A program made the translations under genes and the position numbers. From Eukaryota sp. TZLM1-RC (Eukaryota; Protista; Metamonada: BaSk clade): a DNA stretch of 64,000 nucleotides. The stretch is from the NCBI GenBank assembly GCA_040285825.1, contig JAUPSS010000010.1, positions 1,317,038 to 1,381,037 on the forward strand. The letters are read 5' to 3'. How positions within the stretch are numbered: the stretch's first letter is position 1; each line of letters starts with the position of its first letter. A model generated the notes under the pieces. It was not told the origin of the DNA and searched no databases. It was given only the letters and a program-made list of their open reading frames with translations. Positions 19,201-64,000 of the stretch are shown here, one piece after another.

Positions 19201-22200
19201 ATTAAAATTCCATTACCTTTTCGAGTTGATGAGAGGAGATAAACATCACTAAAAGTATAAATAGTATCTGAGTTTGTTAAATCCAAGTCTGAACTATCAA
19301 GAACAAAATCTGCAGAAATGATGAGATCATCCTCATAATTGAATTCAATATTACCATTATTTGAACTGAAACCACTTAAAGAATCTAGCTTAGTATTAAA
19401 AAATGAAGCACTAGATGTAGATTCAGAGTTAATAGTAAAACTACTTGCCTTTAAATCACCATTATTAAAGGTAACAGATCCTTCTTGGAGTTCAATTGAG
19501 TCAATGTCAATACTTTCAAAAGTGTCATCATAGTCAAAAGTAACGTGACCAGTTTCTATTTTGAGCAAGTCTAATAATTTAAATTCAGCACCATCAAAAC
19601 TTAATTCATTGTCAGTTTTAACAATAAAATCACCAGTATCCACCTTTGAACCAGAAGTAAACGTCAACTTTCCATGTGAGTGAGTGATGGAACCAATTCC
19701 TGTATAAGTACCTTCAATTGATAATTCAATAGGTTCCTGTAAAGTTAGCGTATTTGGATGAACTTCAAGCTTGGAATTTTCGTTAAATGTATAAGAATCT
19801 CCTTTGAAAATAGCTTCACCACCATCTAAAACCTTTAAAGTTCCACCAATGGTATTATCTACATCTAATTCTAATTTACCAATTACATTAATAGTGCCTT
19901 GTAAATCAAATAAATCCTCAATTACCAAAGTACCTTCTTCCTCTATATTAAGTGTACCCAATATTTGGAAATCTGTTTTGGATGAGGTTGAAACAATAAG
20001 TGTAGAATCGAGTTGGAAAACCAAATCTAAAGGTAAAATAAATTGTCCATCTAATATTTCCAACTTGGCATTTCCAGAACTAATTTGACCTCCACTATTA
20101 AATGTAAGCTTATGAAGGTCACTTATTTTGTTGTTATTAGGGGAATGATCTAAAATTTGACAATTTTCATTACAAATTGTTTCACCACTTTCAGCAAATT
20201 CACTATTGGCAATTGACAAACTCTTAGCTACCAAATTACCAGCACCATTTCTAGTAGAATCTATTAATTTTACATCATCACAGTTATAATTAACAGAATT
20301 TTTCAAAGTTAGCTCGGAATTTTCCAAGTCAACATCAAAAGCTATGTCAAAATCATCATCATATTCCAAAGTTAAATGACCCTTTATGGACGTGAAACCA
20401 CTTAAAGAATCTAGCTTTGTATTAAAAAATGAAGCACTAGCTGTAGATTCAGAGTTAATAGTAAAACTACTTGCCTTTAAATCACCATTATTAAAGGTAA
20501 CAGATCCTTCTTGGAGTTCAATTGAGTCAATGTCAATACTTTCAAAAGTGTCATCATAGTCAAAAGTAACGTGACCAGTTTCTATTTCTAGCGAGTGTAA
20601 TGATTTAAATTCAGCACCATCAAAAGTTAATTCATTGTCAGTTTTAACAATAAAATCACCGGTATCCACCTTTGAACCAGAAGTAAACGTCAACTTTCCA
20701 TGTGAGTGAGTGATGGAAACAAATCCTTTATAAGTACCTTCAATTGATAATTCAATAGGTTCCTGTAAAGTTAGCGTATTTGGATGAACTTCAAGCTTGG
20801 AATTTTCGTTAAATGTATAAGAATCTCCTTTCAAAATAGCTTCACCACCATCTAAAACCTTTAAAGTTCCACCAATGGTATTATCTACATCTAATTCCAA
20901 TTTACCATTTACATTGATAGTGCCTTGTAAATCAAATAAATTCTCAATTACCAAAATACCTTCTTCCTCTATATTAAGTGTACCCAATATTTGGAAATCT
21001 GTTTTGGATGAGGTTGAAACAGTAAGTGTAGAATCGAGTTGGAAAACTAAATCTAAAGGTAAAATAAATTGTCCATCTAATATTTCCAATTTGGCATTTC
21101 CAGAACTAATTTGACCTCCACTATTAAATGTAAGCTTATGAAGGTCACTTATTTTGTTATTATTAAGGGAATGATCTAAAATTTGACAATTTTCATTACA
21201 AATTGTTTCACCACTTTCAGCAAATTCACTATTGGCAATTGACAAACTCTTAGCTACCAAATTACCAGCACCATTTCTAGTAGAATCTATTAATTTTACA
21301 TCATCACAGTTATAATTAACAGAATTTTTCAAAGTTAGCTCGGAATTTTCCAAGTCAACATCAAAAGCTATGTCAAAATCATCATCATATTCCAAAGTTA
21401 AATGACCCTTTATGGACGTGAAGCCAGTTAAAGAATCTAGCTTAGTATTAAAAAATGAAGCACTAGATGTAGATTCAGAGTTAATAGTAAAACTACTTGC
21501 CTTTAAATCACCATTATTAAAGGTAACAGATCCTTCTTGGAGTTCAATTGAGTCAATGTCAATACTTTCAAAAGTGTCATCATAGTCAAAAGTAACGTGA
21601 CCAGTTTCTATTTTGAGCAAGTCTAATGATTTAAATTCAGCACCATCAAAACTTAATTCATTGTCAGTTTTAACAATAAAATCACCAGTATCCACCTTTG
21701 AACCAGAAGTAAACGTCAACTTTCCATGTGAGTGAGTGATGGAACCAATTCCTGTATAAGTACCTTCAATTGATAATTCAATAGGTTCCTGTAAAGTTAG
21801 CGTATTTGGATGAACTTCAAGCTTGGAATTTTCGTTAAATGTATAAGAATCTCCTTTCAAAATAGCTTCACCACCATCTGAAACCTTTAAAGTTCCACCA
21901 ATGGTATTATCTACATCTAATTCCAATTTACCATTTACAATGATAGTGCCTTGTAAATCAAATAAATCCTCAATTACCAAAGTACCTTCTTCCTCTATAT
22001 TAAGTGTACCCAATATTTGGAAATCTGTATCGGATGAGGTTGAAACAATAAGTGTAGAATCGAGTTGGAAAACCAAATCTAAAGGTAAAATAAATTGTCC
22101 ATCTAATATTTCCAACTTGGCATTTCCAGAACTAATTTGACCTCCACTATTAAATGTAAGCTTATGAGGTTCAGTTAATTTGTTACTATTAGGGGAATGA

Positions 22201-25200
22201 TCTAAAATTTGACAATTTTCATTACAAATTGTTTCACCACTTTCAGCAAATTCACTATTGGCAATTGACAAACTCTTAGCTACCAAATTACCAGCACCAT
22301 TTCTAGTAGAATCTATTAATTTTACATCATCACAGTTATAATTAACAGAATTTTTCAAAGTTAGCTCGGAATTTTCCAAGTCAACATCAAAAGCTATGTC
22401 AAAATCATCATCATATTCCAAAGTTAAATGACCCTTTATGGACGTGAAACCACTTAAAGAATCTAGCTTTGTATTAAAAAATGAAGCACTAGCTGTAGAT
22501 TCAGAGTTAATAGTAAAACTACTTGCCTTTAAATCACCATTATTAAAGGTAACAGATCCTTCTTGGAGTTCAATTGAGTCAATGTCAATACTTTCAAAAG
22601 TGTCATCGTAAACAAAAGTAACGTGGCCAGTTTCTATTTCTAGCGAGTGTAATGATTTAAATTCAGCACCATCAAAAGTTAATTCATTGTCAGTTTTAAC
22701 AATAAAATCACCAGTATCCACCTTTGAACCAGAAGTAAACGTCAACTTTCCATGTGAGTGAGTGATGGAACCAAATCCTTTATAAGTACCTTCAATTGAT
22801 AATTCAATAGGTTCCTGTAAAGTTAGCGTATTTGGATGAACTTCAAGCTTGGAATTTTCGTTAAATGTATAAGAATCTCCTTTCAAAATAGCTTCACCAC
22901 CATCTAAAACCTTTAAAGTTCCACCAATGGTATTATCTACATCTAATTCCAATTTACCATTTACATTGATAGTGCCTTGTAAATCAAATAAATTCTCAAT
23001 TACCAAAATACCTTCTTCCTCTATATTAAGTGTACCCAATATTTGGAAATCTGTTTTGGATGAGGTTGAAACAGTAAGTGTAGAATCGAGTTGGAAAACT
23101 AAATCTAAAGGTAAAAATAAATTGTCCATCTAATATTTCCAATTTGGCATTTCCAGAACTAATTTGACCTCCACTATTAAATGTAAGCTTATGAAGGTCA
23201 CTTATTTTGTTATTATTAAGGGAATGATCTAAAATTTGACAATTTTCATTACAAATTGTTTCACCACTTTCAGCAAATTCACTATTGGCAATTGACAAAC
23301 TCTTAGCTACCAAATTACCAGCACCATTTCTAGTAGAATCTATTAATTTTTACATCATCACAGTTATAATTAACAGAATTTTTTTCAAAGTTAGCTCGGA
23401 ATTTTCCAAGTCAACATCAAAAGCTATGTCAAAATCATCATCATATTCCAAAGTTAAATGACCCTTTATGGACGTGAAGCCAGTTAAAGAATCTAGCTTT
23501 GTATTAAAAAATGAAGCACTAGCTGTAGATTCAGAGTTAATAGTAAAACTACTTGCCTTTAAATCACCATTATTAAAGGTAACAGATCCTTCTTGGAGTT
23601 CAATTGAGTCAATGTCAATACTTTCAAAAGTGTCATCATAGTCAAAAGTAACGTGACCAGTTTCTATTTCTAGCGAGTCTAATGATTTAAATTCAGCACC
23701 ATCAAAACTTAATTCATTGTCAGTTTTAACAATAAAATCACCAGTATCCACCTTTGAACCAGAAGTAAACGTCAACTTTCCATGTGAGTGAGTGATGGAA
23801 CCAAATCCTTTATAAGTACCTTTAATTGTTAATTCAATAGGTTCCTGTAAAGTTAGCGTATTTGGATGAACTTCAAGCTTGGAATTTTCGTTAAATGTAT
23901 AAGAATCTCCTTTGAAAATAGCTTCACCACCATCTAAAACCTTTAAAGTTCCACCAATGGTATTATCTACATCTAATTCTAATTTACCATTTACATTAAT
24001 AGTGCCTTGTAAATCAAATAAATCCTCAATTACCAAAATACCTTCTTCCTCTATATTAAGTGTACCCAATAGTTGGAAATCTGTTTTGGATGAGGTTGAA
24101 ACAATGACTTTAGAGTTTGCAGAAATCAAATTTCCGTCCTTTAAAATAAAAGTAGCTGAATTAATTTGGAAGTAGAGAGGAGATTCAGAATCCATATTAC
24201 CATTACCATCAAAAATTAATTCGTGGGAATCTTTTACATTTATAATGTTAGTTTCACCATTGATCACATCGCAGTTTTCAGTACATTTAGTTTGGGAATT
24301 ACCAGTAAAAGTGGTACCTGAGAAACTCAACTTTCCGACTATTAGCATTCCATTACCTTTTCGAGTTGATGAGAGGAGATAAACATCACTAAAAGTATAA
24401 ATAGTATCTGAGTTTGTTAAATCCAAGTCTGAACTATCAAGATCAAAATCTGCAGAAATGATGAGATCATCCTCATAATTAAATTCAATATTACCATTAT
24501 TTGAACTGAAACCACTCAAAGAATCTAGCTTAGTATTAAAAAATGAAGCACTAGCTGTAGATTCAGAGTTAATAGTAAAACTACTTGCCTTTAAATCACC
24601 ATTATTAAAGGTAACAGATCCTTCTTGGAGTTCAATTGAGCCAATGTCAATACTTTCAAAAGTGTCATCATAGTCAAAAGTAACGTGACCAGTTTCTATT
24701 TTGAGCAAGTCTAATGATTTAAATTCAGCACCATCAAAACTTAATTCATTGTCAGTTTTAACAATAAAATCACCAGTATCCACCTTTGAACCAGAAGTAA
24801 ACGTCAACTTTCCATGTGAGTGAGTGATGGAACCAATTCCTGTATAAATACCTTCAATTGATAATTCAATAGGTTCCTGTAAAGTTAGCGTATTTGGATG
24901 AACTTCAAGCTTGGAATTTTCGTTAAATGTATAAGAATCTCCTTTGAAAATAGCTTCACCACCATCTAAAACCTTTAAAGTTCCACCAATGGTATTATCT
25001 ACATCTAATTCTAATTTACCATTTACATTGATAGTGCCTTGTAAATCAAATAAATCCTCAATTACCAAAGTACCTTCTTCCTCTATATTAAGTGTACCCA
25101 ATATTTGGAAATCTGTTTTGGATGAGGTTGAAACAGTAAGTGTAGAATCGAGTTGGAAAACCAAATCTAAAGGTAAAATAAATTGTCCATCTAATATTTC

Positions 25201-27738
25201 CAACTTGGCATTTCCAGAACAAATTTGACCTCCACTATTAAATGTAAGCTTATGAGGTTCACTTATTTTGTTGTTATTAGGGGAATGATCTGAAATTTGA
25301 CAATTTTCATTACAAATTGTTTCACCACTTTCAGCAAATTGACTATTGGCAAATGACAAACTCTTAGCTACCAAATTACCAGCACCATTTCTAGTAGAAT
25401 CTACTAATTTGAGGTCATCAAAGTTATAATTAACAGAATTTTTCAAAGTTAGCTCGGAATTTTCCAACTCAACATCAAAAGCTATGTCAAAATCATCATC
25501 ATATTCCAAAGTTAAATGACCCTTTGTTAAGGCCAAAGTAGTGAAAGAACCTAGCTGCGTATTAGTAAATGAAGCACTAGTGGTAGATTCAGGGTTGAAA
25601 GTTAAACTATTTGTCACTAATTCGCCATTGTTAAAGGTAACAGATCCTTTTTCGACATGAATGCTCTCAAAGTGTGCAACATCATTGGTCTCGAGTAAAA
25701 AGAAAATGTTTCCTGATAAGATACGAAGATTCACAATGTTTAAAAAGTTGAAATGTTCCAAGTCGTAATGATAATCACCTTCAAAATCCAAACCAAATAT
25801 AGGAGTGTCTATTCTAGAATCTTCAAGTAAATTAAATCCATCCCGGTAGATAAGCATCAATTCTCCTTTCCAAAGTCCGTCAAAATTGATCACTGTATTC
25901 TCTGTCGTAGTAAAGGACTTGGGGTATTGTTGAAGGATAGAATCAGTAGTGAAGGTGTAAATAGCATCCTTAAACGAAACCAGTCCATCTTCTTCAATTA
26001 TAAGACTGCCATCAATCTGAGAATTTTTGGAGAAAATAACATTTCCAGTCATGATCGTCATGCTACCTTCAAGTTTTATCTTACAATTTAAAGTAATATC
26101 TTCTCCTGAATCAACAACCACATCTCCAGTTATGACAATGGTGGTTGACCCAGAACACTCAAATTGATCCTTGACAAGAGAAGTTCCTTTATAATACACA
26201 AATGCTACCCCGCTTGGTATTGACTTAACAAAACTGTTATCGTAAAAGAAAAATCTCCCAGGCCCAATGGCACTGGGGCTAACATGTGTTTCCTCTAGGC
26301 CTTCAGCACCACTTTGATAGAAGATAGTTTCCCAATCAGATTGATAAAGGCCCTTGGTGAACACTTTATAATAACGAAGTCTTCCATTGAATTGATCAAA
26401 GATATCATCTTCAGAGTATAACAAACCAAAATCCAAAGGTAAAGTTCTTTTACAAGAACCAAAAGAAGTTAGTGAATGCGTGTCAATATGTACGCTACCT
26501 CCCCATTCACCATACACCCGCACCCTATCATCAACACTGTAAGCCATTGGTATAAACCTACTGGGAAAATTATTTCCACCAGAAGTACTATCAAAGCAAA
26601 TCCGAGTATTAGCGTCAACGTTCGAGAGGTCAAATTGATATCTAGCATAATTATTGAGAAAGCTCCTGAGTCTAGCGAATCCGGTTTTAAAATGACAATC
26701 CCCAGATTCAGAGGAGTAAATACCAAAAGCTTCACTACTACCCCCGGACAATCTATTTGACCTGTAGTTCATGAATATCGAATAAGGACCAGTAGGGGCA
26801 GGTCTAAAACTGCTAAGCAAATGGTCGTTGTTACCAGGCATTGAAACATGATCACTTTCATGCTGAGTATTACCTCTAATTTGAGCAAAGAAATTACCAA
26901 AGAAATCACTGAAATAACCATTACTAGGAGGATCTCTAAAGTTAAAATAAACTAATAAATCATTTTCTACTGCAGAATAATAGGATTTTGACTTAAATTG
27001 AACAGTACAACCATCAACATTGAGTTCGGAATTTTCCCCTTTCAACTCTATTTCATTATTCATTTCCGAGTCTTCATTAAACTCCAAAACTGCACCTTCA
27101 TTGACCACAACCCTTCCAATCAAATGTGCACTAACTCCTAGTTTTAGATGGCTATTGCTTTCCAATTCGACTGGAACAAAGAACTCAACACATGGATCTC
27201 CACCAGTTTTTGCTATCTCAAAAGCACCTGATGAGGGTGATATTAAAACTTTATTTTCTTTATTATAAACATGGCGAACACTTAGTTCAGAGTTCGGAAA
27301 TAGAGTAAGACTGCAACTATCAAAAACTTGAAAGAAACCAAATAAAAGTAAAGTGCCTGAGCGTAGTTCTTTAGAACTCTCTGATTTAAGATGTAAAGTA
27401 GAGTGAATGTTGAATAACTGGGTGTCGATCTCGAGACTACCACTGTACCAAACAAAGTTTTCAACTGAAAGAGATGCACTGATTTTGAGATGCGGTAAGG
27501 AAGAACCTCCACCAAGTCTTATTTCGTGGATGTTGGGAAGTAAGTCTCCGTATAACGTCACTTGAATATCATGTTGAATAACATAGACTAAACCATAAGT
27601 ATAAAAGTTGTCACCATCTGAGAAAGACCAATTCTCGACATCAGAAAAGCTGCCACCATCACCAGAGGTCCAGTGAACTTCAGTGGCCAAGACAGTGAAA
27701 TAGAAGATGAGAAGAAGAAGGATTGAGTGAGGAAGCAT
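13203..27738 (-). CDS. Giant predicted cell-surface multi-pass membrane protein (~4840 aa), paralogue 1
   Basis: Signal peptide MLPHSILLLLIFYFTVLA; LamG-like domain; 6 stalk units; IPT/TIG-like motifs (SSLSPP..VVSGFNLG, GGMITIEGNSF); Cys-rich CDKCPRNTFS..CQQCPLG; ~8 hydrophobic C-terminal segments. Needs removal of 4 extra homopolymer bases (23379-85, 23347-51, 23113-17). Confidence 0.85.
19110..25530 (-). repeat. Coding tandem array of 1026/1032-bp units (342/344 aa)
   Basis: Antisense ORF spacing of 1026 and 1032 bp; common half plus alternative A or B half; order B-A-A-A-A-B'. Confidence 0.95.
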
Positions 27739-47159: not shown

Positions 47160-50100
47160 TTCTTTTTTCCTTCCTCTACATAAAACCGTTTAACTGAAAA
47201 CCTGGCTGAACAGTGACCATTGCTTCTATTCTTTCTTGTTGATGCCTGAATCAGTTTCTGATTCTAATGGAGTCAAAAGAAAGAACGATAGACAACAAGA
47301 TGCTCAAGACGTCCTTTCCACCTCTCCTCCTCAACCTCTTCTGTCTTCATGTTTGGACAAAAAAATTCCTGATCAAGAATTTTTTTTAGAAAATCACGAT
47401 GAAAACAAAGTTTGTTCAAAAACGAAGCCACGCTCCTACAGATGCTCAAAGTGTCGACAACAAGGACATAATGCGCGAACATGCCCCAATGTTGGAAAAA
47501 ATGATGTGACAAATTCTGAAACAAAATGTAAAAGAAAATATATTAGAAGAAAAGAGTCTAAGGTAGAACCAATAAATGATGATCCACAAGTTGTTGCAAA
47601 ACCAGTTAGCAATTGATTGAAGCACAAAACTTGCAACAATTGTGGTATTTCTTTTAGAAAAAATGCAAAAGGAAAAACTTCTGATCGATGCTTGAAATGC
47701 CGCATAGTTGATATCTACCATCCTCCCATAAGAATACTTCAAGAAATTCATCCGTCAAAATGCAATGAATTTGCTTTCGTTTTTCAAAGATTTATGGATC
47801 AATTATGTAAAGGAAAGTATGCTATCAATAATCTTTGGGAATTCTTTGGTTCTTTTTGTCCTCCTTTTGAACAAAATTTCGTAAATAATTCCGAAAATTT
47901 AACTAATATAGCACCGAGAAATCAGTCATCTGAAAAATTAAGTAAAATTTTTGAAGAGAAATGCTTTGACAACAAATGGTCCAAGGCTTTGTCAGCTTTA
48001 AGTCCCGGAGTTAAAGCACCCAACAATGAAAATACAATAGATAAACTAAAAGTACTTCATCCTTATGAAGACCCTATAATGGATCAAAATTTTTACGGCA
48101 CTTACTGGGAAAATTATCCATTGATGCCATCAGAAGTTTTTTCGGTGATAAAAAAGAGACCACGCGGTAAGTCTGCCGGACTTTCTGGTATTACTATTGA
48201 TCATGTAAAAGCCGCAATTATTTCTTCAGAGGATTGTCTTGGTTTATTAACCAAATTTTTCAACATGGACAACTCAAATATCCAGTTGAATTAAGAAGTT
48301 CTCGTTTGACTGCACTTGTCAAAAATTCAAAAATGGATGTTCGTCCTATTGCAGTCTCTGAGAGCTTACAAATTATTTTTTCTGCGTGTTGCTTAAACAG
48401 GTTCAATGAGAAAGCAAAAAAGATTTTATTACCCTTTCAATATGGAATTAATACCACGGATGGAGTCTCTTCAGCGATATTTGCTACTGATGTATTATTT
48501 CGCCAAAATGAATCCAATGTTTGTATGTCATTGGATTTTAGTAATGCTTTCAATTCACTAAGTCATCGCAGTATCCATAATGCTCTATTGCAATATATGC
48601 CGGAATTAATGCCATATTTTCAATCAACATATTGCACATATTCTAATTTACATTTTGATAATAGCAATTTAAGTTCATCAAGTGGTGTAAAGCAAGGAGA
48701 TCCGTTAGGACCTCTTTTGTTTTGTTTGGCCATTCATCCTATTTTATTGCAAATTCAAGAGATGTTTCCTTCACTAAAAATGATTGCATATATGGATGAT
48801 GTTGTGCTTATTGGTGATTTAAATATTGTGAAACCAGCAACTGTATGTTTTAAAGAATTATTTACCAAAATTGGTCTCCGACTTAATTTACTTAAATGTG
48901 TTTTGTTATCGAATTTTCCAGTTTCCACAATAGTTGATGGTATTGAAAGTCAAGCCAAATTATATTCAATTGATGCTATTCGTCATTTGGGTTCGTTTTT
49001 AGGAAATAATAGTGAAATTACCAAAAAATTGTTTGAAAAGTTGAAATCAATTTCTGACAAAATTGACCGAATGATGAATTTAGATATAAAAAACACATCA
49101 AATTTACCATTATAAGACTGTGTTTTAGTTCCAACTTCAATCATATATTTCGATCTACAAATCCTCTCATCACTAGACCTTTGGCTCAGAAGTTTAATGA
49201 ATTACGTGCAAAAGTTCTGTCTCAATTAATGGGATGTAAAATGTTCCAAATTCTAGATCATGCTTACCTTAGTCCACATTATGGCGGTTTAGGGTGGACG
49301 AAGGCTTCTATTCTTACCTCGTGTGCTTTTGTTGGTGGATGCAGAAATGCAATCTTTGAGTTTTCCGAAAGATTTGCAGATTGGGAAGATTTATTGATGA
49401 CAACACAAAGTTCCACTGTTTTTGCATTAAATGAAAGAATTTCAAAAATTGATGTAGAAAAACGGGGTCGATGTTTTCCCCAATCATTCAATGGCAATAT
49501 TCCAGAAAAAAATGTTTTAAATTTGAAGTACACTCTTCGAACATTACAGAAACGATTGACTGGAATGTATGAAAAAGATCTTTATAATAATATATGCAGC
49601 TCGGCTGTTTTAAATCAAGATCTTCACTCATTGTTATTGGAAAAGGGTGTTTGTGAAAACAAGTCATCAGATTCTTCACTTTTTGTAACCATTGTACCAC
49701 GAAGATTTGGATTGTGTGCCACTAATGAAGCACTTGTAACAAAAATGAGATTATATTTGAATATCCCCATTAATCAATTATTATCAAAAGAAAAATGTAT
49801 TTGTTCGAATTCACCTCAACTCACTTTGCGCCATGCTCTGAATTGCTCTAAATTGATAACTTATCGTTCTTCATTACAAGATGCTGTTAGAGACACTGTT
49901 TTCAATATGGCACAAACTGCAAGAATATCGTGTATCAAAGAGCCCCTGCTGAAGGAAACACTTTCTCTGAATAATTTTGGTTCTGATGATAGAGGTGATG
50001 TATACTGTGATTGGATTGATAATTCTGAAGCTATTGTTGACTTTGTCTCATGTACTGTTGCAAATGATACTTTGGTTCACAGAAGAAAACTTAATCCTGT

Positions 50101-50499
50101 GGCTGCTCTGGATTTTAAAGCAAAAGCGAAACATAGAAAATATGATAAAGATATTGCAGAGGCTAATGTCGATAGAAATACACAGCTGGTTTTTATTGCT
50201 TTCCCATTTTCGATAAATGGAAGATTATCAGTTGAAGCAGAAACTTTTTTGAATGACTTACAAAAAATGGTGCAAGAAAAAACAATGAAAAGATTTGATA
50301 TTTTTTTATGGCGTTCACGGATTCAATTTGCCATTATTAATATATTACCACGGTTTTTCAACCGAATAAGAGAAGCTTTAGCTAGACAGCAAGCAGATCA
50401 AGATTTTGTAGAGGAAATCTTGGTTCAATGATAGTCGTCGCATTAGTTATGAGTTATTTTAATTAAGTGTGCAAATTCAATAAATAATACAAGTAATTA
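47160..50499 (+). mobile_element. Near full-length RLE-type (CRE-like) non-LTR retrotransposon N1 copy 2, inserted in an older N1
   Basis: From ATG 47242: CCHC (CSKCRQQGHNARTC), CxxC pair, RT with YMDD, Zn finger, RGD..D..K..KY endonuclease, stop at 50431; in-frame TGA at 47614, frameshifts at ~48265 and 49088; possible TSD AATTTAA at 47153-47159/50500-50506. Confidence 0.9.
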
Positions 50500-50875
50500 A
50501 ATTTAAGGCTAATTTAAGAAAAACATAGAAAATATAACAAGGTTATCGAAGAAGCTAAAACTAATAGGAATAGACCACTTGTATTTATTGCTTTCCCGTT
50601 TTCGATAAACGGAAGACTAGCAGTAGAAACAGGAACTTTTTTCAATAATTTCCAAAAAATGTTTCAAGAAATAACATTGAAAAGATTTGATATCTTTTTT
50701 GGCGCTCTCGGATTCAATTTGCCATTATTAGTAGATTGCCTCGGTTTTTCAATCAAATTAGAGAAGCTTTAGCTAGACAGTAAGCATATCAAGATTTTGT
50801 AGAGGAAGTCTTGGTTCAATGAATTTAGTCCCATTGATTATGAGTGTATTTTGTTAAGTGTGCAAGTTAATAAGC
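50500..50875 (+). pseudogene. Old N1 copy, 3' piece
   Basis: Resumes at the KHRKY region and repeats the N1 3' end in degenerate form. Confidence 0.8.
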
Positions 50876-50989: not shown

Positions 50990-53900
50990 ATGCTTCCTCC
51001 CTATGTCATCCTTCTTCTCATCTTCTATTTCACTGTCTTGGCCACTGAAGTTCACTGGACCTCTGGTGATGGTGGCAGCTTTTCTGATGTCGAGAATTGG
51101 TCTTTCTCAGATGGTGACAACTTTTATACTTATGGTTTAGTCTATGTTATTCAACATGATATTCAAGTGACGTTATACGGAGACTTACTTCCCAACATCC
51201 ACGAAATAAGACTTGGTGGAGGTTCTTCCTTACCGCATCTCAAAATCAGTGCATCTCTTTCAGTTGAAAACTTTGTTTGGCACAGTGGTAGTCTCGAGAT
51301 CGACACCCAGTTATTCAACATTCACTCTACTTTACATCTTAAATCAGAGAGTTCTAAAGAACTACGCTCAGGCACTTTACTTTTATTTGGTTTCTTTCAA
51401 GTTTTTGATAGTTGTACTCTTACTCTATTTCCGAACTCTGAACTAGGTGTTCGCCATGTTTATAATAAAGAAAATAAAGTTTTAATATCACCCTCATCAG
51501 GTGCTTTTGAGATAGCAAAAACTGGTGGAGATCCATGTGTTGAGTTCTTTGTTCCAGTTCAACTGGAAAGCAATAGCCATCTAAAACTAGGAGTTAGTGC
51601 ACATTTGATTGGAAGGGTTGTGGTCAATGAAGGTGCAGTTTTGGAGTTTAATGAAGACTCGGAAATGAATAATGAAATAGAGTTGAAAGGGGAAAATTCG
51701 GAACTCAAAGTTGATGGTTGTACTGTTCAATTTAAGTCAAAATCCTATTATTCTGCAGTAGAAAATGATTTATTAGTTTATTTTAACTTTAGAGATCCTC
51801 CTAGTAATGGTTATTTCAGTGATTTCTTTGGTAATTTCTTTGCTCAAATTAGAGGTAATACTCAGCATGAAAGTGATCATGTTTCAATGCCTGGTACTAA
51901 TGATTTTTTGCTTAGCAGTTTCAGACCTGCCCCTACTGGTCCTTTCACTATCTATATGGATTACGACATCAGATCCTCAATCTCGGGCGACACTACTGTC
52001 CAATTTGGCCTAGAATCTAGCCAATCATCTTGTAATTTTGCTACAGGATTTCATAGGGAGATGCGTTCTATCTTTGGTGTTCCTTATGGCATCGGTCATT
52101 TTGATTTTACACTTTCCTCAATTTCGACACAAACTATAGTTACTGATCAGCTGATTGGTAGAGATTTTGAAAGTAGGTTTCGTCCCGTAGCATATACTGT
52201 ATCCAACTCAGATGTCACAGTAATGAACATACATGATGGTTCTTTCCACATCAAAGATCATAGTTCTTCTCCGCTAAGTCCATGCCAACGTACTTTTCCT
52301 TTGGATTTTAGTGCTTTACTTGATTTCAGCGGTACTGTTGTTAATAGGCATAATGGTAAACTCCGTGATTATAGAGTTTACAATAAAGCTATTAGCGAAG
52401 TAGAGGCTACCACATTGTTTTCCCAGTCAGGAAGTGAAGGAATTGTTGAAACCACCACAGTCCCTGAATTTAGTGGACAGACTTCAATTACGTTGAATGA
52501 AGGTAGCGCAATAATACCATTTCCAGCAGAATTTGACTATGTTTATTATGTTGGAATTTCTATTTTTAATAGCCAGTTTACTTGCCTTGGGAATACGATA
52601 GTTGTCATAACTGGAGATGTGGTTGTTGATTCAGGAGAAGATATTACTTTAAATTGTAAGATAAAACTTGAAGGTAGCATGACGATCATGACTGGAAATG
52701 TTATTTTCTCCAAAAATTCTCAGATTGATGGCAGTCTTATAATTGAAGAAGATGGACTGGTTTCGTTTAAGGATGCTATTTACACCTTCACTACTGATTC
52801 TATCCTTCAACAATACCCCAAGTCCTTTACTACGACAGAGAATACAGTGATCAATTTTGACGGACTTTGGAAAGGAGAATTGATGCTTATCTACCGGGAT
52901 GGATTTAATTTACTGGAAGATTCTAGAATAGACACTCCTATATTTGGTTTGGATTTTGAAGGTGATTATCATTACGACTTGGAACATTTCAACTTTTTAA
53001 ACATTGTGAATCTTCGTATCTTATCAGGAAACATTTTCTTTTTACTCGAGACCAATGATGTTGCACACTTTGAGAGCATTCATGTCGAAAAAGGATCTGT
53101 TACCTTTAACAATGGCGAATTAGTGACAAATAGTTTAACTTTCAACCCTGAATCTACCACTAGTGCTTCATTTACTAATACGCAGCTAGGTTCTTTCACT
53201 ACTTTGGCCTTAACAAAGGGTCATTTAACTTTGGAATATGATGATGATTTTGACATAGCTTTTGATGTTGAGTTGGAAAATTCCGAGCTAACTTTGAAAA
53301 ATTCTGTTAATTATAACTTTGATGATGTAGAATTAGTAGATTCTACTAGAAATGGTGCTGGTAATTTGGTAGCTAAGAGTTTGTCAATTGCCAATAGTGA
53401 ATTTGCTGAAAGTGGTGAAACAATTTGTAATGAAAATTGTCAAATTTTAGATCATTCCCCTAATAATAACAAAATAAGTGACCTTCATAAGCTTACATTT
53501 AATAGTGGAGGTCAAATTTGTTCTGGAAATGTCAAGTTGCAAATATTAGATGGACAATTCATTTTACCTTTAGATTTAGTTTTCCAACTCGATTCTACAC
53601 TTACTGTTTCAACCTCATCCAAAACAGATTTCCAAATATTGGGTACACTTAATATAGAGGAAGAAGGTATTTTGGTAATTGAGAATTTATTTGATTTACA
53701 AGGCACTATTAATGTAATTGGTAAATTAGAATTAGATGTAGATAATACCATTGGTGGAACTTTAAAGGTTTTAGATGGTGGTGAAGCTATTTTCAAAGGA
53801 GATTCTTATACATTTAACGAAAATTCCAAGCTTGAAGTTCATCCAAATACGCTAACTTTACAGGAACCTATTGAATTAACAATTGAAGGTACTTATACAG

Positions 53901-56900
53901 GAATTGGTTCCATCACTCACTCACATGGAAAGTTGACGTTTACTTCTGGTTCAAAGGTGGATACTGATGATTTTATTGTTAAAACTGACAATGAATTAAC
54001 TTTTAATGGTGCTGAATTTAAATCATTAGACTCGCTAGAAATAGAAACTGGTCACGTTACTTTTGACTATGATGACACTTTTGAAAGTATTGACATTGAC
54101 TCAATTGAACTCCAAGAAGGATCTGTTACCTTTAATAATGGTGATTTAAAGGCAAGTAGTTTTACTATTAACTCTGAATCTACAGCTAGTGCTTCATTTT
54201 TTAATACAAAGCTAGATTCTTTAAGTGGCTTCACGTCCATAAAGGGTCATTTAACTTTGGAATATGATGATGATTTTGACATAGCTTTTGATGTTGACTT
54301 GGAAAATTCCGAGCTAACTTTGAAAAATTCTGTTAATTATAACTTTGATGATGTAAAATTAGTAGATTCTACTAGAAATGGTGCTGGTAAAGTGGTAGCT
54401 AAGAGTTTGTCATTTGCCAATAGTGAATTTGCTGAAAGTGGTGAAACAATTTGTAATGAAAATTGTCAAATTTTAGATCATTCCCCTAATAATAACAAAT
54501 TAACTGAACCTCATAAGCTTACATTTAATAGTGGAGATCAAATTAGTTCTGGAAATGCCAAGTTGGAAATATTAGATGGACAATTTATTTTACCTTTAGA
54601 TTTGGTTTTCCAACTCGATTCTACACTTATTGTTTCAACCTCATCCAAAACAGATTTCCAAATATTGGGTACACTTAATATAGAGGAAGAAGGTATTTTG
54701 GTAATTGAGAATTTATTTGATTTACAAGGCACTATCAATGTAAATGGTAAATTAGAATTAGATGTAGATAATACCATTGGTGGAACTTTAAAGGTTTTAG
54801 ATGGTGGTGAAGCTATTTTCAAAGGAGATTCTTATACATTTAACGAAAATTCCAAGCTTCAAGTTCATCCAAATACGCTAACTTTACAGGAACCTATTGA
54901 ATTATCAATTGAAGGTACTTATACAGGAATTGGTTCCATCACTCACTCACATGGAAAGTTGACGTTTACTTCTGGTTCAAAGGTGGATACTGATGATTTT
55001 ATTGTTAAAACTGACAATGAATTAACTTTTAATGGTGCTGAATTTAAATCATTAGACTCGCTAGAAATAGAAACTGGTGACGTTACTTTTGACTATGATG
55101 ACACTTTTGAAAGTATTGACATTGACTCAATTGAACTCCAAGAAGGATCTGTTACCTTTAATAATGGTGATTTAAAGGCAAGTAGTTTTACTATTAACTC
55201 TGAATCTACAGCTAGTGCTTCATTTTTTAATACAAAGCTAGATTCTTTAAGTGGCTTCACGTCCATAAAGGGTCATTTAACTTTGGAATATGATGATGAT
55301 TTTGACATAGCTTTTGATGTTGACTTGGAAAATTCCGAGCTAACTTTGAAAAATTCTGTTAATTATAACTTTGATGATGTAAAATTAGTAGATTCTACTA
55401 AAAATGGTGCTGGTAAAGTGGTAGCTAAGAGTTTGTCAATTGCCAATAGTGAATTTGCTGAAAGTGGTGAAACAATTTGTAATGAAAATTGTCAAATTTT
55501 AGATCATTCCCCTAATAACAACAAAATAAGTGACCTTCATAAGCTTACATTTAATAGTGGAGGTCAAATTAGTTCTGGAAATGCCAAGTTGGAAATATTA
55601 GATGGACAATTTATTTTACCTTTAGATTTGGTTTTCCAACTCGATTCTACACTTATTGTTTCAACCTCATCCAAAACAGATTTCCAAATATTGGGTACAC
55701 TTAATATAGCGGAAGAAGGTATTTTGGTAATTGAGAATTTATTTGATTTACAAGGCACTATCAATGTAAATGGTAAATTAGAATTAGATGTAGATAATAC
55801 CATTGGTGGAACTTTAAAGGTTTTAGATGGTGGTGAAGCTATTTTGAAAGGAGATTCTTATACATTTAACGAAAATTCCAAGCTTCAAGTTCATCCAAAT
55901 ACGCTAACTTTACAGGAACCTATTGAATTAACAATTGAAGGTACTTATACAGGAATTGGTTCCATCACTCACTCACATGGAAAGTTGACGTTTACTTCTG
56001 GTTCAAAGGTGGATACTGATGATTTTATTGTTAAAACTGACAATGAATTAACTTTTAATGGTGCTGAATTTAAATCATTAGATTCGCTAGAAATACAAAC
56101 TGGTCACGTTACTTTTGACTATGATGACACTTTTGAAAGTATTGACATTGACTCAATTGAACTCCACGAAGGATCTGTTACCTTTAATAATGGTGATTTA
56201 AAGGCAAGTAGTTTTACTATTAACTCTGAATCTACAGCTAGTGCTTCATTTTTCAATACAAAGCTAGATTCTTTCAGTGGATTCAGTTCAAATAATGGTA
56301 ATATTGAATTTAATTATGAGGATGATCTCACCATTTCTGCAGATTTTGTTCTTGATAGTTCAGACTTGGAATTAACAAACTCAGATACTATTTATACTTT
56401 TAGTGATGTTTATCTTCTCTCATCAACTCGAAAAGGTAATGGAATTTTAATAGTCGGAGAGTTGAGTTTCTCAGGTACCACTTTTACTGGTAATTCCCAA
56501 ACGAAATGTACTGAAAACTGCGATGTGATCAATGGTGAAACTAACATTATAAATGTAAAAAATTCCCACGAATTAATTTTTGATGGTAATGGTAATATGG
56601 ATTCTGAATCTCCTCTCTACTTCCAAATTAATTCAGCTACTTTTATTTTAAAGGACGGAAATTTGATTTCTGCAAACTCTAAAGTCATTGTTTCAACCTC
56701 ATCCGATACAGATTTCCAAATATTGGGTACACTTAATATAGAGGAAGAAGGTACTTTAGTAATTGAGAATTTATTTGATTTACAAGGCACTATCAATGTA
56801 AATGGTAAATTAGAATTAGATGTAGATAATACCATTGGTGGAACTTTAAAGGTTTTAGATGGTGGTGAAGCTAATTTCAAAGGAGATTCCTATATATTTA

Positions 56901-59900
56901 ACGAAAATTCCAAGCTTAAAGTTCATCCAAATACGCTAACTTTACAGGAACCTATTGAATTAACAATTGAAGGTACTTATACAGGAATTGGTTCCATCAC
57001 TCACTCACATGGAAAGTTGACGTTTACTTCTGGTTCAAAGGTTGATACCGGAGATTTTATTGTCAAAACTGACAATGAATTAACTTTTAATGGTGCTGAA
57101 TTTAAATCATTAGACTTGCTAAAAATAGAAACTGGTCACGTTACTTTTGACTATGATGACACTTTTGAAATTATTGACATTGACTCAATTGAACTCCAGG
57201 AAGGATCTGTTACCTTTAATAATGGTGATTTAAAGGCAAGTAGTTTTACTATTAACTCTGAATCTACAGCTAGTGCTTTATTTTTTAATACAAAGCTAGA
57301 TTCTTTAACTGGTTTCAGTTCAAATAATGGTAATATTGAATTTAATTATGAGGATGATCTCATCATTTCTGCAGCTTTTGTTCTTGATAGTTCAGACTTG
57401 GATTTAACAAACTCAGATACTATTTATACTTTTAGTGATGTTTATCTTCTCTCATCAACTCGAAAAGGTAATGGAATGCTAATAGTCGAAAAGTTGAGTT
57501 TTTCAGGTACCACTTTTACTGGCAATTCCCAAACTAAATGTACTGAAAACTGCGATGTGATCAATGGTGAAACTAACATTATAAATGTAAAAGATTCCCA
57601 CGAATTAATTTTTTTGATGGTAATGGTAATATGGATTCTGAATCTCCTCTCTACTTCCAAATTAATTCAGCTACTTTTTATTTTTAAAGGAAGGGAGTTT
57701 GATTTCTGCAAACCCTAAAGTCATTGTTTCAACCTCATCCAAAACAGATTTCCAAATATTGGGTACACTTAATATAGAGGAAGAAGGTATTTTGGTAATT
57801 GAGGATTTATTTGATTTACAAGGCACTATTAATGTAAAATGGTAAATTAGAATTAGATGTAGATAATACCATTGGTGGAACTTTAAAGGTTTCAGATGGT
57901 GGTGGAGCTATTTTCAAAGGAGATTCTTATACATTTAACGAAAATTCCAAGCTTGAAGTTCATCCAAATACGCTAACTTTACAGGAACCTATTGAATTAT
58001 CAATTGAAGGTACTTATACAGGAATTGGTTCCATCACTCACTCACATGGAAAGTTGACGTTTACTTCTGGTTCAAAAGGTGGATACTGATGATTTTATTG
58101 TTAAAACTGACAATGAATTAACTTTTAGTGGTGCTGAATTTAAATCATTAGACTCGCTAGAAATAGAAACTGGTCACGTTACTTTTGATTACGATGACAC
58201 TTTTGAAAGTATTGACATTGACTCAATTGAACTCCAAGAAGGATCTGTTACCTTTAATAATGGTGATTTAAAGGCAAGTAGTTTTACCATTAACTCTGAA
58301 TCTACAGCTAGTGCTTCATTTTTTTCAATACAAAGCTAGATTCTTTAACTGGTTTCAGTTCAAATAATGGTAATATTGAATTTAATTATGAGGATGATCT
58401 CATCATTTCTGCAGCTTTTGTTCTTGATAGTTCAGACTTGGATTTAACAAACTCAGATACTATTTATACTTTTTAGTGATGTTTATCTTCTCTCATCAAC
58501 TCGAAAAAGGTAATGGAATGCTAATAGTCGAAAAGTTGAGTTTCTCAGGTACCACTTTACTGGTAATTCCCAAACCAAATGTACTGAAAACTGCGATGTG
58601 ATCAATGGTGAAACTAACATTATAAATGTAAAAAGATTCCCACGAATTAATTTTTTTGATGGTAATGGTAATATGGATTCTGAATCTCCTCTCTACTTCC
58701 AAATTAATTCAGCTACTTTTATTTTTAAAGGAAGGGAGTTTGATTTCTACAGACTCTAAAGTCATTGTTTCAACCTCATCCAAAAACAGATTTCCAAATA
58801 TTGGGTACACTTAATATAGAGGAAGAAGGTATTTTTGGTAATTGAGAATTTATTTGATTTACAAGGCACTATTAATGTCAATGGTAAATTAGAATTAGAT
58901 GTAGATAATACCATTGATGGAACTTTAAAGGTTTTAGATGGTGGTGAAGCTAATTTCAAAGGAGATTCCTATACATTTAACGAAAATTCCAAGCTTGAAG
59001 TTCATCCAAATACGCTAATTTTACAGGAACCTATTGAATTAACAATTAAAAGGTACTTATACAGGAATTGGTTCCATCACTCACTCACATGGAAAGTTGA
59101 CGTTTACTTCTGGTTCAAAGGTTGATACCGGAGATTTTATTGTCAGAACTGACAATGAATTAACTTTTAATGGTGCTGAATTTAAATCATTAGACTCGCT
59201 AGAAATAGAAACTGGTGACGTTACTTTTTGATTACGATGACACTTTTGAAAGTATTGACATTGACTCAATTGAACTCCAAGAAGGATCTGTTACCTTTAA
59301 TAATGGTGATTTAAAGGCAAGTAGTTTTACTATTAACTCTGAATCTACAGCTAGTGCTTCATTTTTTAATACAAAGCTAGATTCTTTAACTGGTTTCAGT
59401 TCAAATAATGGTAATATTGAATTTAATTATGAGGATGATCTCATCATTTCTGCAGCTTTTGTTCTTGATAGTTCAGACTTGGATTTAACAAACTCAGATA
59501 CTATTTATACTTTTAGTGATGTTTATCTTCTCTCATCAACTCGAAAAGGTAATGGAATGCTAATAGTCGAAAAGTTGAGTTTCTCAGGTACCACTTTTAC
59601 TGGTAATTCCCAAACTAAATGTACTGAAAACTGCGATGTGATCAATGGTGAAACTAACATTATAAATGTAAAAGATTCCCACGAATTAATTTTTGATGGT
59701 AATGGTAATATGGATTCTGAATCTCCTCTCTACTTCCAAATTAATTCAGCTACTTTTATTTTAAAGGAAGGGAGTTTGATTTCTACAGACTCTAAAGTCA
59801 TTGTTTCAACCTCATCCAAAACAGATTTCCAAATATTGGGTACACTTAATATAGAGGAAGAAGGTATTTTGGTAATTGAGAATTTATTTGATTTACAAGG

Positions 59901-62900
59901 CACTATTAATGTCAATGGTAAATTAGAATTAGATGTAGATAATACCATTGATGGAACTTTAAAGGTTTTAGATGGTGGTGAAGCTAATTTCAAAGGAGAT
60001 TCCTATACATTTAACGAAAATTCCAAGCTTGAAGTTCATCCAAATACGCTAATTTTACAGGAACCTATTGAATTAACAATTAAAGGTACTTATACAGGAA
60101 TTGGTTCCATCACTCACTCACATGGAAAGTTGACGTTTACTTCTGGTTCAAAGGTTGATACCGGAGATTTTATTGTCAGAACTGACAATGAATTAACTTT
60201 TAATGGTGCTGAATTTAAATCATTAGACTCGCTAGAAATAGAAACTGGTGACGTTACTTTTGATTACGATGACACTTTTGAAAGTATTGACATTGACTCA
60301 ATTGAACTCCAAGAAGGATCTGTTACCTTTAATAATGGTGATTTAAAGGCAAGTAGTTTTACTATTAACTCTGAATCTACAGCTAGTGCTTCATTTTTTA
60401 ATACAAAGCTAGATTCTTTAACTGGTTTCAGTTCAAATAATGGTAATATTGAATTTAATTATGAGGATGATCTCATCATTTCTGCAGCTTTTGTTCTTGA
60501 TAGTTCAGACTTGGATTTAACAAACTCAGATACTATTTATACTTTTAGTGATGTTTATCTTCTCTCATCAACTCGAAAAGGTAATGGAATGCTAATAGTC
60601 GAAAAAGTTGAGTTTCTCAGGTACCACTTTTACTGGTAATTCCCCAAACTAAATGTACTGAAAACTGCGATGTGATCAATGGTGAAACTAACATTATAAA
60701 TGTAAAAGATTCCCACGAATTAATTTTTGATGGTAATGGTAATATGGATTCTGAATCTCTCTCTACTTCCAAATTAATTCAGCTACTTTTTATTTTTAAA
60801 GGAAGGGAGTTTGATTTCTACAGACTCTAAAGTCATTGTTTCAACCTCATCCAAAAACAGATTTCCAAATATTGGGTACACTTAATATAGAGGAAGAAGG
60901 TATTTTTGGTAATTGAGAATTTATTTGATTTACAAGGCACTATTAATGTCAATGGTAAATTAGAATTAGATGTAGATAATACCATTGATGGAACTTTAAA
61001 GGTTTTTAGATGGTGGTGAAGCTAATTTCAAAGGAGATTCCTATACATTTAATGAAAATTCCAAGCTTGAAGTTCATCCAAATACGCTAATTTTACAGGA
61101 ACCTATTGAATTAACAATTAAAAGGTACTTATACAGGAATTGGTTCCATCACTCACTCACATGGAAAGTTGACGTTTACTTCTGGTTCAAAGGTTGATAC
61201 CGGAGATTTTTTATTGTCAGAACTGACAATGAATTAACTTTTAATGGTGCTGAATTTAAATCATTACACTCGCTAGAAATAGAAACTGGTCACGTTACTT
61301 TTTGATTACGATGACACTTTTGAAAGTATTGACATTGACTCAATTGAACTCCAAGAAGGATCTGTTACCTTTAATAATGGTGATTTAAAGGCAAGTAGTT
61401 TTACTATTAACTCTGAATCTACAGCTAGTGCTTCATTTTTTAATACAAAGCTAGATTCTTTAACTGGTTTCAGTTCAAATAATGGTAATATTGAATTTAA
61501 TTATGAGGATGATCTCATCATTTCTGCAGCTTTTGTTCTTGATAGTTCAGACTTGGATTTAACAAACTCAGATACTATTTATACTTTTAGTGATGTTTAT
61601 CTTCTCTCATCAACTCGAAAAGGTAATGGAATGCTAATAGTCGAAAAGTTGAGTTTCTCAGGTACCACTTTTACTGGTAATTCCCAAACTAAATGTACTG
61701 AAAACTGCGATGTGATCAATGGTGAAACTAACATTATAAATGTAAAAGATTCCCACGAATTAATTTTTGATGGTAATGGTAATATGGATTCTGAATCTCC
61801 TCTCTACTTCCAAATTAATTCAGCTACTTTTTATTTTAAAGGAAGGGAGTTTGATTTCTACAGACTCTAAAGTCATTGTTTCAACCTCATCAAAAACAGA
61901 TTTCCAAATATTGGGTACACTTAATATAGAGGAAGAAGGTATTTTTGGTAATTGAGAATTTATTTGATTTACAAGGCACTATTAATGTCAATGGTAAATT
62001 AGAATTAGATGTAGATAATACCATTGATGGAACTTTAAAGGTTTTAGATGGTGGTGAAGCTAATTTCAAAGGAGATTCCTATACATTTAACGAAAATTCC
62101 AAGCTTGAAGTTCATCCAAATACGCTAATTTTACAGGAACCTATTGAATTAACAATTAAAAGGTACTTATACAGGAATTGGTTCCATCACTCACTCACAT
62201 GGAAAGTTGACGTTTACTTCTGGTTCAAAGGTTGATACCGGAGATTTTATTGTCAGAACTGACAATGAATTAACTTTTAATGGTGCTGAATTTAAATCAT
62301 TACACTCGCTAGAAATAGAAACTGGTCACGTTACTTTTTGATTACGATGACACTTTTTGAAAGTATTGACATTGACTCAATTGAACTCCAAGAAGGATCT
62401 GTTACCTTTAATAATGGTGATTTAAAGGCAAAGTAGTTTTACTATTAACTCTGAATCTACAGCTAGTGCTTCATTTTTAATACAAAGCTAGATTCTTTAA
62501 CTGGTTTCAGTTCAAATAATGGTAATATTGAATTTAATTATGAGGATGATCTCATCATTTCTGCAGCTTTTGTTCTTGATAGTTCAGACTTGGATTTAAC
62601 AAACTCAGATACTATTTATACTTTTAGTGATGTTTTATCTTCTCTCATCAACTCGAAAAGGTAATGGAATGCTAATAGTCGAAAAAGTTGAGTTTCTCAG
62701 GTACCACTTTTACTGGTAATTCCCAAACTAAATGTACTGAAAACTGCGATGTGATCAATGGTGAAACTAACATTATAAAATGTAAAAAGATTCCCACGAA
62801 TTAATTTTTGATGGTAATGGTAATATGGATTCTGAATCTCCTCTCTACTTCCAAATTAATTCAGCTACTTTTATTTTAAAGGAAGGGAGTTTGATTTCTA

Positions 62901-64000
62901 CAGACTCTAAAGTCATTGTTTCAACCTCATCCAAAACAGATTTCCAAATATTGGGTACACTTAATATAGAGGAAGAAGGTATTTTTGGTAATTGAGAATT
63001 TATTTGATTTACAAGGCACTATTAATGTCAATGGTAAATTAGAATTAGATGTAGATAATACCATTGATGGAACTTTAAAGGTTTTAGATGGTGGTGAAGC
63101 TAATTTCAAAGGAGATTCCTATACATTTAACGAAAATTCCAAGCTTGAAGTTCATCCAAATACGCTAATTTTACAGGAACCTATTGAATTAACAATTAAA
63201 GGTACTTATACAGGAATTGGTTCCATCACTCACTCACATGGAAAGTTGACGTTTACTTCTGGTTCAAAGGTTGATACCGGAGATTTTATTGTCAGAACTG
63301 ACAATGAATTAACTTTTAATGGTGCTGAATTTAAATCATTAGACTCACTAGAAATAGAAACTGGTCACGTTACTTTTGGTTATGATGACACTTTTAAAAG
63401 TATTGACATTGACTCAATTGAACTCCAAGAAGGGTCTGTTACCTTTAATAATGGTGATTTAAAGGCAAGTAGTTTTACTATTAACTCTGAATCTACAGCT
63501 AGTGCTTCATTTTTTAATACAAAGCTAGATTCTTTAACTGGTTTCAGTTCAAATAATGGTAATATTGAATTTAATTATGAGGATGATCTCATCATTTCTG
63601 CAGCTTTTGTTCTTGATAGTTCAGACTTGGATTTAACAAACTCAGATACTATTTATACTTTTAGTGATGTTTATCTTCTCTCATCAACTCGAAAGGTAAT
63701 GGAATGCTAATAGTCGAAAAGTTGAGTTTTCAGGTACCACTTTTACTGGCAATTCCCAAACTAAAATGTACTGAAAGCTGCGATGTGATCAATGGGTGAA
63801 ACTAACATTATAAATGTAAAGATTCCACGAATTAATTTTTTTGATGGTAATGGTAATATGGATTCTGAATCTCCTCTCTACTTCCAAATTAATTCCAGCT
63901 ACTTTTATTTTAAAGGAAGGGAGTTTGATTTCTGCAAACCCTAAAGTCATTGTTTCAACCTCATCAAAACAGATTTCCAAATATTGGGTACACTTAATAT
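50990..64000 (+). CDS. Giant predicted cell-surface protein, paralogue 2 (3' end outside the window)
   Basis: Signal peptide MLPPYVILLLIFYFTVLA; near-identical to paralogue 1 outside the variable cassette; open to 57718, then broken almost only by 1-nt homopolymer indels. Confidence 0.85.
53215..64000 (+). repeat. Coding tandem array, at least 10 units of ~1026/1032 bp
   Basis: Order A-A then at least 8 B units; antisense ORFs at 53512, 54538 and 55564 are 1026 bp apart. Confidence 0.95.

Follow-up and report, generated by a model that had tools for sequence, protein, structure and literature searches.

Introduction

In the human red/green opsins, RHD/RHCE and the clustered protocadherins, neighbouring gene copies (those of the opsins lie ~24 kb apart) are kept near-identical by conversion, while the short stretch that sets specificity stays diverged (PMC3924837). 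This 'peak of divergence under gene conversion' is a published signature of selection against homogenisation, and the review that describes it cites Teshima and Innan (2008) for divergence peaks (PMC3924837). Heterologous blocks between long identical flanks that could guide conversion are also found in yeast MAT/HML/HMR, Neisseria pilE/pilS and the trypanosome VSG genes. In the fungal adhesins Flo, Epa and Als, which are recombining paralogues, an N-terminal lectin-type domain stands on a tandem-repeat stalk; the stalk varies in length, its repeats are homogenised, and the binding heads differ among paralogues.

Here we compare with these systems two paralogous genes, A and B, in the last 64 kb of contig JAUPSS010000010.1 (assembly GCA_040285825.1, filed as Eukaryota sp. 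TZLM1-RC); this 64,000-nucleotide stretch is referred to below as the window. The source organism, Skoliomonas litria, a newly described anaerobic flagellate of soda lakes, is a free-living bacterivore (PMC11316075, PMC11603281). Its published assembly consists of 16 contigs built from Nanopore R9.4 data with Illumina polishing, with 55% repeats (PMC11316075).

The A/B pattern matches the published signature of a divergence peak under conversion (PMC3924837). In contrast to the opsins, RHD/RHCE and the protocadherins, the A/B peak is far deeper (~650 bp, with saturated silent sites and 36% protein identity), the genes are 14-22 kb long, intronless and inverted, and the functional difference between the heads is putative. 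With the fungal adhesins, A and B share the layout of a binding head on a variable-length stalk, whereas Flo, Epa and Als carry PA14 or Ig-like folds and a GPI or cell-wall anchor, A and B have a LamG/ConA-like domain and a multi-pass tail, and there is no sequence relationship between them. Unlike the mating-type, pilin and VSG systems, A and B come without a silent donor set (in the window and loci L001-L004), nuclease or recombination site; both look like full genes, and there is no evidence of switching.

Results

A single diverged block interrupts two near-identical genes

From the ATG to ~65 bp beyond the stop codon, A and B are 97-98% identical in DNA, with the exception of one block near the 5′ end (Table 1). 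A reading made by a model from the letters of this stretch without database searches (the sequence-only reading) had described near-identity for ~950 bp from the signal peptide, followed by a block of 219 versus 215 codons, open in both genes and about one third identical as protein, and then an abrupt return to identity. Each of these observations was borne out. The 5′ blastn match extends for 955 bp at 97.7% identity, the block beyond it yields no nucleotide alignment with blastn, and protein alignment gives 36% amino-acid identity. The right edge is sharp: identity returns exactly at TTGTCATAACTGG (52602), and the following 313 bp (52602-52914) are 100% identical. The left edge is softer, with seven differences at 51897-51922, then conserved PAPTGP codons and divergence from 51945. 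When third codon positions of A and B were scanned by likelihood for two breakpoints, the block came out at 51946-52600, with differences of 0.65 inside against 0.04 outside.

The differences in the 5′ flank are clustered at 51000-51010 and 51897-51922. Six of the 22 fall within signal-peptide codons 4-7 (PPYV versus PHSI; 51000-51010 versus 27718-27728). GC and GC3 of the block are similar to those of the flanks, and on this basis a foreign origin of B's block was rejected. The sequence-only reading had also proposed a test for shared breakpoints. When we searched the edges for repeats or recombination sites, we found only chance-level repeats of 12-16 nt, none of them common to the edges of A and B.

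Table 1. Positions of the genes, flanks, diverged blocks and domains of paralogues A and B in the 64-kb window.
Feature	Position (nt)	Strand	Description
Paralogue A, 5′ 13 kb	50990-64000	+	Signal peptide, N-terminal cap, LamG-like domain, repeat stalk; runs off contig end
Constant 5′ flank of A	50990-51944	+	Corresponds to B 26784-27738; 955 bp, 97.7% (blastn); 22 differences
Tract 97-100% DNA-identical in A, B and C	51704-51839; C locus ~10715-10850	+	136 bp; ~100 bp upstream of block
LamG/ConA-like jelly roll of A	51752-52432	+	~Residues 255-481; Laminin_G_3 alignment, hhalign, AF2 + Foldseek
Diverged block of A	51945-52601	+	657 bp, 219 codons, A residues 319-537, open
Constant 3′ flank of A	52602-54274	+	Corresponds to B 24466-26138; 1.67 kb, 97.4% (blastn)
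Paralogue B, whole gene	13203-27738	-	~4,845 codons, intronless
Break between B's two ORFs	23130-23350	-	Homopolymer lengths A7 vs A5, A5 vs A4, T5 vs T4 relative to sister repeats
Diverged block of B	26139-26783	-	645 bp, 215 codons, open
LamG/ConA-like jelly roll of B	26293-26976	-	~Residues 255-482; AF2 model, Foldseek, VIA-align

Gene layout and assembly

A and B lie head-to-head in inverted orientation, 23 kb apart, and their upstream regions are unrelated. In B, the signal peptide is followed by a ~230-residue N-terminal cap, the LamG-like domain and a stalk built of ~345-residue repeats; then come an Ig/IPT-like region (with a weak Ig_TgrO1 match), a Cys-rich module of the Ephrin_rec_like type and, last, the multi-pass membrane tail. 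Past the Ephrin_rec_like module, the C-terminal 230 residues of B (13203-13900, reverse strand) contain 6-8 hydrophobic helices and have no Pfam match; these 'adhesins' thus end in a multi-pass membrane domain rather than a single anchor. Both within and across A, B and a third paralogue, C, the stalk repeats (~1,035 bp; 53215-64000 and 13203-25000) share 94-98% identity. They are more similar across paralogues than the heads are, and past 53290 C differs from A and B at just 9-15% of silent sites.

Both A and B carry ORF breaks in the assembly. The one in B, judging by its homopolymer lengths, probably reflects Nanopore consensus errors, and because of it GenBank files B as separate hypothetical proteins; the same is true of C, which is split into three gene calls. 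A is open to 57718, with indel-type breaks beyond. Over ~6.3 kb, window positions 57733-64000 match the reversed end of contig JAUPSS010000008.1 (1-6263) with four mismatches and 81 gap positions, and the two contigs should probably be joined inside A's repeat stalk. Both overlapping contig ends look unpolished, which explains the frame breaks of A after 57718. Through this overlap, the C-terminal half of A corresponds to GenBank KAL0207813.1 and KAL0207812.1, and it is uniformly 98.2% identical to B across 8.9 kb. If the contig join holds, A's stalk would be ~7 kb longer than B's. The public record can be corrected in two respects: the overlapping contigs are to be joined, and genes are filed as several 'hypothetical proteins'.

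LTR and non-LTR retroelements are plentiful in the window. A non-LTR retrotransposon at 47617-50850 (RVT_1 ORF 48234-49115) stops ~140 bp short of A's ATG. At the 3′ end of the retrotransposon (50600-50853), k-mer depth is 400-1500 in sequencing runs in which the gene itself is at 3-5, identifying it as a very high-copy element.

The block encodes most of a predicted LamG/ConA-like jelly roll

What the block encodes became apparent from profile and structure comparisons rather than from family models. Pfam assigned no family to the domain pieces of A, B and C at E ≤ 10, and none to residues 1-1200 of protein P0002 at E ≤ 0.001; a PDB sequence profile search gave chance matches only. We built a profile from the A, B and C domains and compared it with 1.84 billion representatives; it retrieved one distant family member and 12 other proteins at E values of 1e-9 to 7e-4. 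All six of these 12 that were scanned with Pfam carry multiple Laminin_G_3 domains, and the match covers the C-terminal strands of those domains. Alignment by hhalign against eight Laminin_G_3 domains gave 93.3% probability (E 2.8e-7, 86 columns), and the usual Laminin_G_3 landmarks are present in a joint alignment.

AF2 models of A and B are all-beta with a C-terminal helix, at low confidence (pLDDT 56.5 and 62.8; pTM 0.55 and 0.60, respectively). ConA-like folds make up the top of the Foldseek matches listed, with lectins of the legume and L-type classes, the neurotoxin HCN subdomain and CBMs. VIA-align of the B model gave Z scores of 18-19 and an rmsd of 2.8-3.1 Å over ~200 residues (model residues 10-237); the best-scoring chains, at 9-14% identity, belong to binding fragments of clostridial neurotoxins, of which they form the lectin-like N-terminal subdomain. 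As a match between a predicted model and known structures, the neurotoxin similarity reflects a shared ConA-clan fold only, with no sign of a toxin relationship. The domain resembles the Laminin_G_3 (PF13385) and ConA-like lectin-glucanase domains found on surface proteins of bacteria and eukaryotes in strand order, in the C-terminal motif FNGxIDEVRIYNRALS (here NGKLRDYRVYNKAIS) and in its predicted jelly roll. Unlike Laminin_G_3, it is matched by no Pfam model and is ~230 rather than ~150 residues long, nearer the size of the neurotoxin subdomain. A, B and C share two Cys (A residues 348 and 432) and the motif NG(K/R)LRxY(R/K)V; a distant paralogue, D, retains them with slight changes. Together, the profile matches and models support a LamG/ConA-type jelly roll, as the sequence-only reading had proposed from the paired Cys and this motif, and we infer a putative ligand-binding role, with a glycan or protein as target, be it on prey, on substrate or on other cells.

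The block does not coincide with this domain. The constant flank holds only the first ~64 residues of A's jelly roll, and the block comprises the remaining three quarters or so (strand 4 onward) plus a 57-residue linker to the stalk. The earlier picture of a domain-bounded 'cassette' therefore has to be given up: the left edge of the block falls after the third strand, and its right edge lies 57 residues beyond the domain. Because its borders differ from the domain borders, the block reflects recombination history.

Silent sites in the block are saturated

In both flanks, dS between A and B is 0.05 (NG86). Inside the block, by the same method, pS is 0.80 (saturated) and dN is 0.70. Where A and B encode the same amino acid, the codons differ in 47 of 77 cases (61%) inside the block, compared with 3/215, 1/56, 0/80 and 12/445 (0-3%) outside. 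This contrast is far beyond chance and indicates that the block's coalescence is much older than that of its frame. The changes are scattered over strands and loops alike, and fast protein evolution alone cannot yield such silent-site depth. Of the dN/dS comparisons that the sequence-only reading had called for, the one between A and B is not estimable because silent sites are saturated; between A and C, dN/dS in the block is 0.27, pointing to purifying selection.

Homology between A and B is confined to the gene. The 136 bp in front of the ATG show no similarity; homology sets in at the ATG and stops ~65 bp past the stop codon. A duplication as recent as dS 0.05 should leave non-coding homology. 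The limits of homology, taken with this dS, thus fit old duplicates converted where they are still homologous, not a recent segmental duplication. Retroposition as the source of gene-limited homology was rejected, as the homologous stretch lacks a poly(A) where it ends on the 3′ side.

Further paralogues show a divergence peak and probable inter-locus exchange

The family found so far has three close members (A, B and C) and one distant one (D). C, which comprises KAL0206456.1 and two more gene calls, is located ~540 kb away on the contig of the window and has ~69% protein identity. D (KAL0204696.1, 5,489 residues) is on a 66.8-kb contig, and its head is 32% identical. In its flanks, C differs from A and B with a dS of 0.34-0.57, and the stalk is its most similar part. 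The divergence peak recurs at the same place in this independent comparison, in a family that extends beyond the two paralogues that the sequence-only reading had compared: A-C codon differences are 47% in the block versus 16-35% in the flanks (Fisher 1e-7), and the best A-C third-position block within the head, 51946-52525, lies above 100 of 100 permutations, with the synonymous-only version borderline. The peak is present in B-C also.

Upstream of the block, the 136-bp tract shared by A, B and C (Table 1) is near-identical at all codon positions; elsewhere the three genes differ at 20-35% of silent sites. Codon differences are 7/55 in the tract versus 53/151 in the N-terminal cap. On this pattern, the tract probably records conversion between loci that lie 540 kb from each other, or else constraint at the nucleotide level.

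Raw identities suggest that A and C pair in the block. However, a four-point bootstrap with D as outgroup gives no clear branching there (48/33/18%), compared with (A,B) in 1997 of 2000 replicates for the flanks. As the block topology is without clear support, our case rests on divergence depth and not on topology. B's block is the most distant from all other family blocks, and may simply be a long branch.

Searches for donors, relatives and joints

The sequence-only reading had called for a search for orphan donor cassettes. Neither block has a second copy in the window or in loci L001-L004 (including the C locus and the end of JAUPSS010000008.1), and we found no donor cassettes among short database proteins. 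Word-index protein searches, in which cluster representatives can hide heads, returned only paralogue C for A's domain, nothing for B's block alone and only itself for D's head; A's 90% cluster, for instance, is represented by a 57-residue fragment. A scan of JGI metagenomes with the family alignment gave 597 pattern matches, of which none was confirmed. No relatives in other organisms were thus found in the protein databases searched, where clustering can hide heads, or in the JGI metagenomes.

Two short-read contigs match A exactly over the edges of the block, at 51916-52066 and 52578-52754, with short sides of 29 and 24 nt; they give modest backing to A's junctions in the assembly. Three low-depth runs, available as short contigs, held no informative joints at the block edges. 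One joint, linking 51769 with 53223, had a side of 23 nt and was discounted as a spurious short match.

Discussion

We consider it probable that the frame of these genes evolves in concert while an island within the binding domain escapes homogenisation. A and B would be old paralogues of a giant membrane-anchored surface protein. Ectopic gene conversion would keep their coding sequence near-identical (dS ~0.05), and that of C to a lesser degree, while a stretch of ~650-700 bp (jelly-roll strands 4 onward plus linker) would escape and has diverged to synonymous saturation. The cell would then carry the same stalk and anchor with two, or with C three, different putative ligand-binding heads. 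We further infer that selection for two binding specificities, and not heterology alone, keeps the block apart. The mosaic, its silent-site depth, homology limited to the gene, the existence of further paralogues and the class of fold are direct results; that homology runs from the ATG to just past the stop codon fits old duplicates under conversion, and the 136-bp tract near-identical in A, B and C argues for inter-locus exchange. Illumina polishing of multi-mapping repeats could exaggerate the identity of the flanks. The sequence-only reading's idea of a putative binding domain left out while its frame is homogenised is supported by the contrast between dS 0.05 and saturation and by homology that ends with the gene; its further suggestion of swapping or antigenic variation is speculation, as there are no donors in the window or in L001-L004 and no recombination sites at the block edges.

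The same mosaic might have arisen if the whole gene had recently been duplicated and one ectopic conversion had then pasted the block of a distant family member, unseen or lost, into B (or A). Sharp edges and near-identical flanks would be expected of such an event, further family members with different heads exist (C and D), inter-locus exchange occurs, and B's block is the farthest from all others. We nevertheless judge this unlikely: the flanking non-coding homology expected of a duplication at dS 0.05 is absent, no donor appears in the window, in L001-L004 or in protein databases, and the A-C peak at the same place would be left unexplained. An assembly artefact, in which collapse or over-polishing of repeats gave distinct genes a false identity around the block, or a chimeric join made one mosaic, is suggested by the Nanopore R9.4 and Illumina-polished assembly of a genome with 55% repeats, by the position of A at a contig end with many indel errors and by the homopolymer breaks in B. 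Yet scattered substitutions separate the flanks of A and B, independent short-read contigs agree with A over both edges (if with short sides of 29 and 24 nt), a 650-bp block fits well inside single long reads, and C has the same architecture in a well-assembled part of its contig. We thus see hardly any chance that the mosaic is artefactual, and collapse is an unlikely source of flanks with 1-3% real differences, a concern that the sequence-only reading had raised. Targeted hypermutation of the block, by a diversity-generating retroelement or similar, has next to nothing in its favour beyond the abundance of reverse transcriptase genes nearby, which belong to LTR and non-LTR transposons. The block differs by indels and all substitution types, at saturation, and no template repeat was found in the window, in L001-L004 or at the block edges; with reverse transcriptases that are transposon-borne, mutagenesis of this type is effectively refuted.

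Programmed or facilitated exchange of cassettes, as in phase or antigenic variation, would let heads swap promoters and stalks across the inverted identical flanks. The geometry is suitable: the block has an identical flank on either side, at least 955 bp long on one and at least 313 bp on the other; A and B are in inverted orientation, separated by 23 kb, and their upstream regions are unrelated; and A's stalk would be ~7 kb longer than B's if the contig join holds. Against this, there are only two local variants and no silent donors (in the window and L001-L004), the edges lack site-specific repeats and deviate from the domain borders, and the low-depth, short-contig reads contain no joints or mosaic contigs at the edges. 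The organism is free-living, with no adaptive immune host to evade, and flank differences of 1-3% speak against very frequent exchange. We regard such exchange as very improbable, and a reading as antigenic variation or switching is unsupported. Equally far-fetched on our estimate, the inverted pair might act as a two-state recognition device, in which recombination in the flanks would re-associate heads with promoter and stalk length, either through conversion across the block or through inversion of the 23-kb spacer. If true, clonal populations of a bacterivore would vary in surface binding, and a free-living eukaryote would thus show phase variation in how it recognises prey or substrate.

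By analogy with the opsins, RHD/RHCE and the protocadherins, the pattern described here is a known one, and on present evidence it reveals no new mechanism; the protein family is new. The locus is an unusually clean and extreme case of the pattern, with a single saturated block of ~650 bp in at least 14 kb of coding sequence at 97-98% identity. Under concerted evolution of the frame with an escaping island, the block would mark the region most likely to determine which ligand this otherwise unannotated giant surface protein binds. It may thereby provide a handle for asking what these flagellate proteins bind: prey, substrate or mates.
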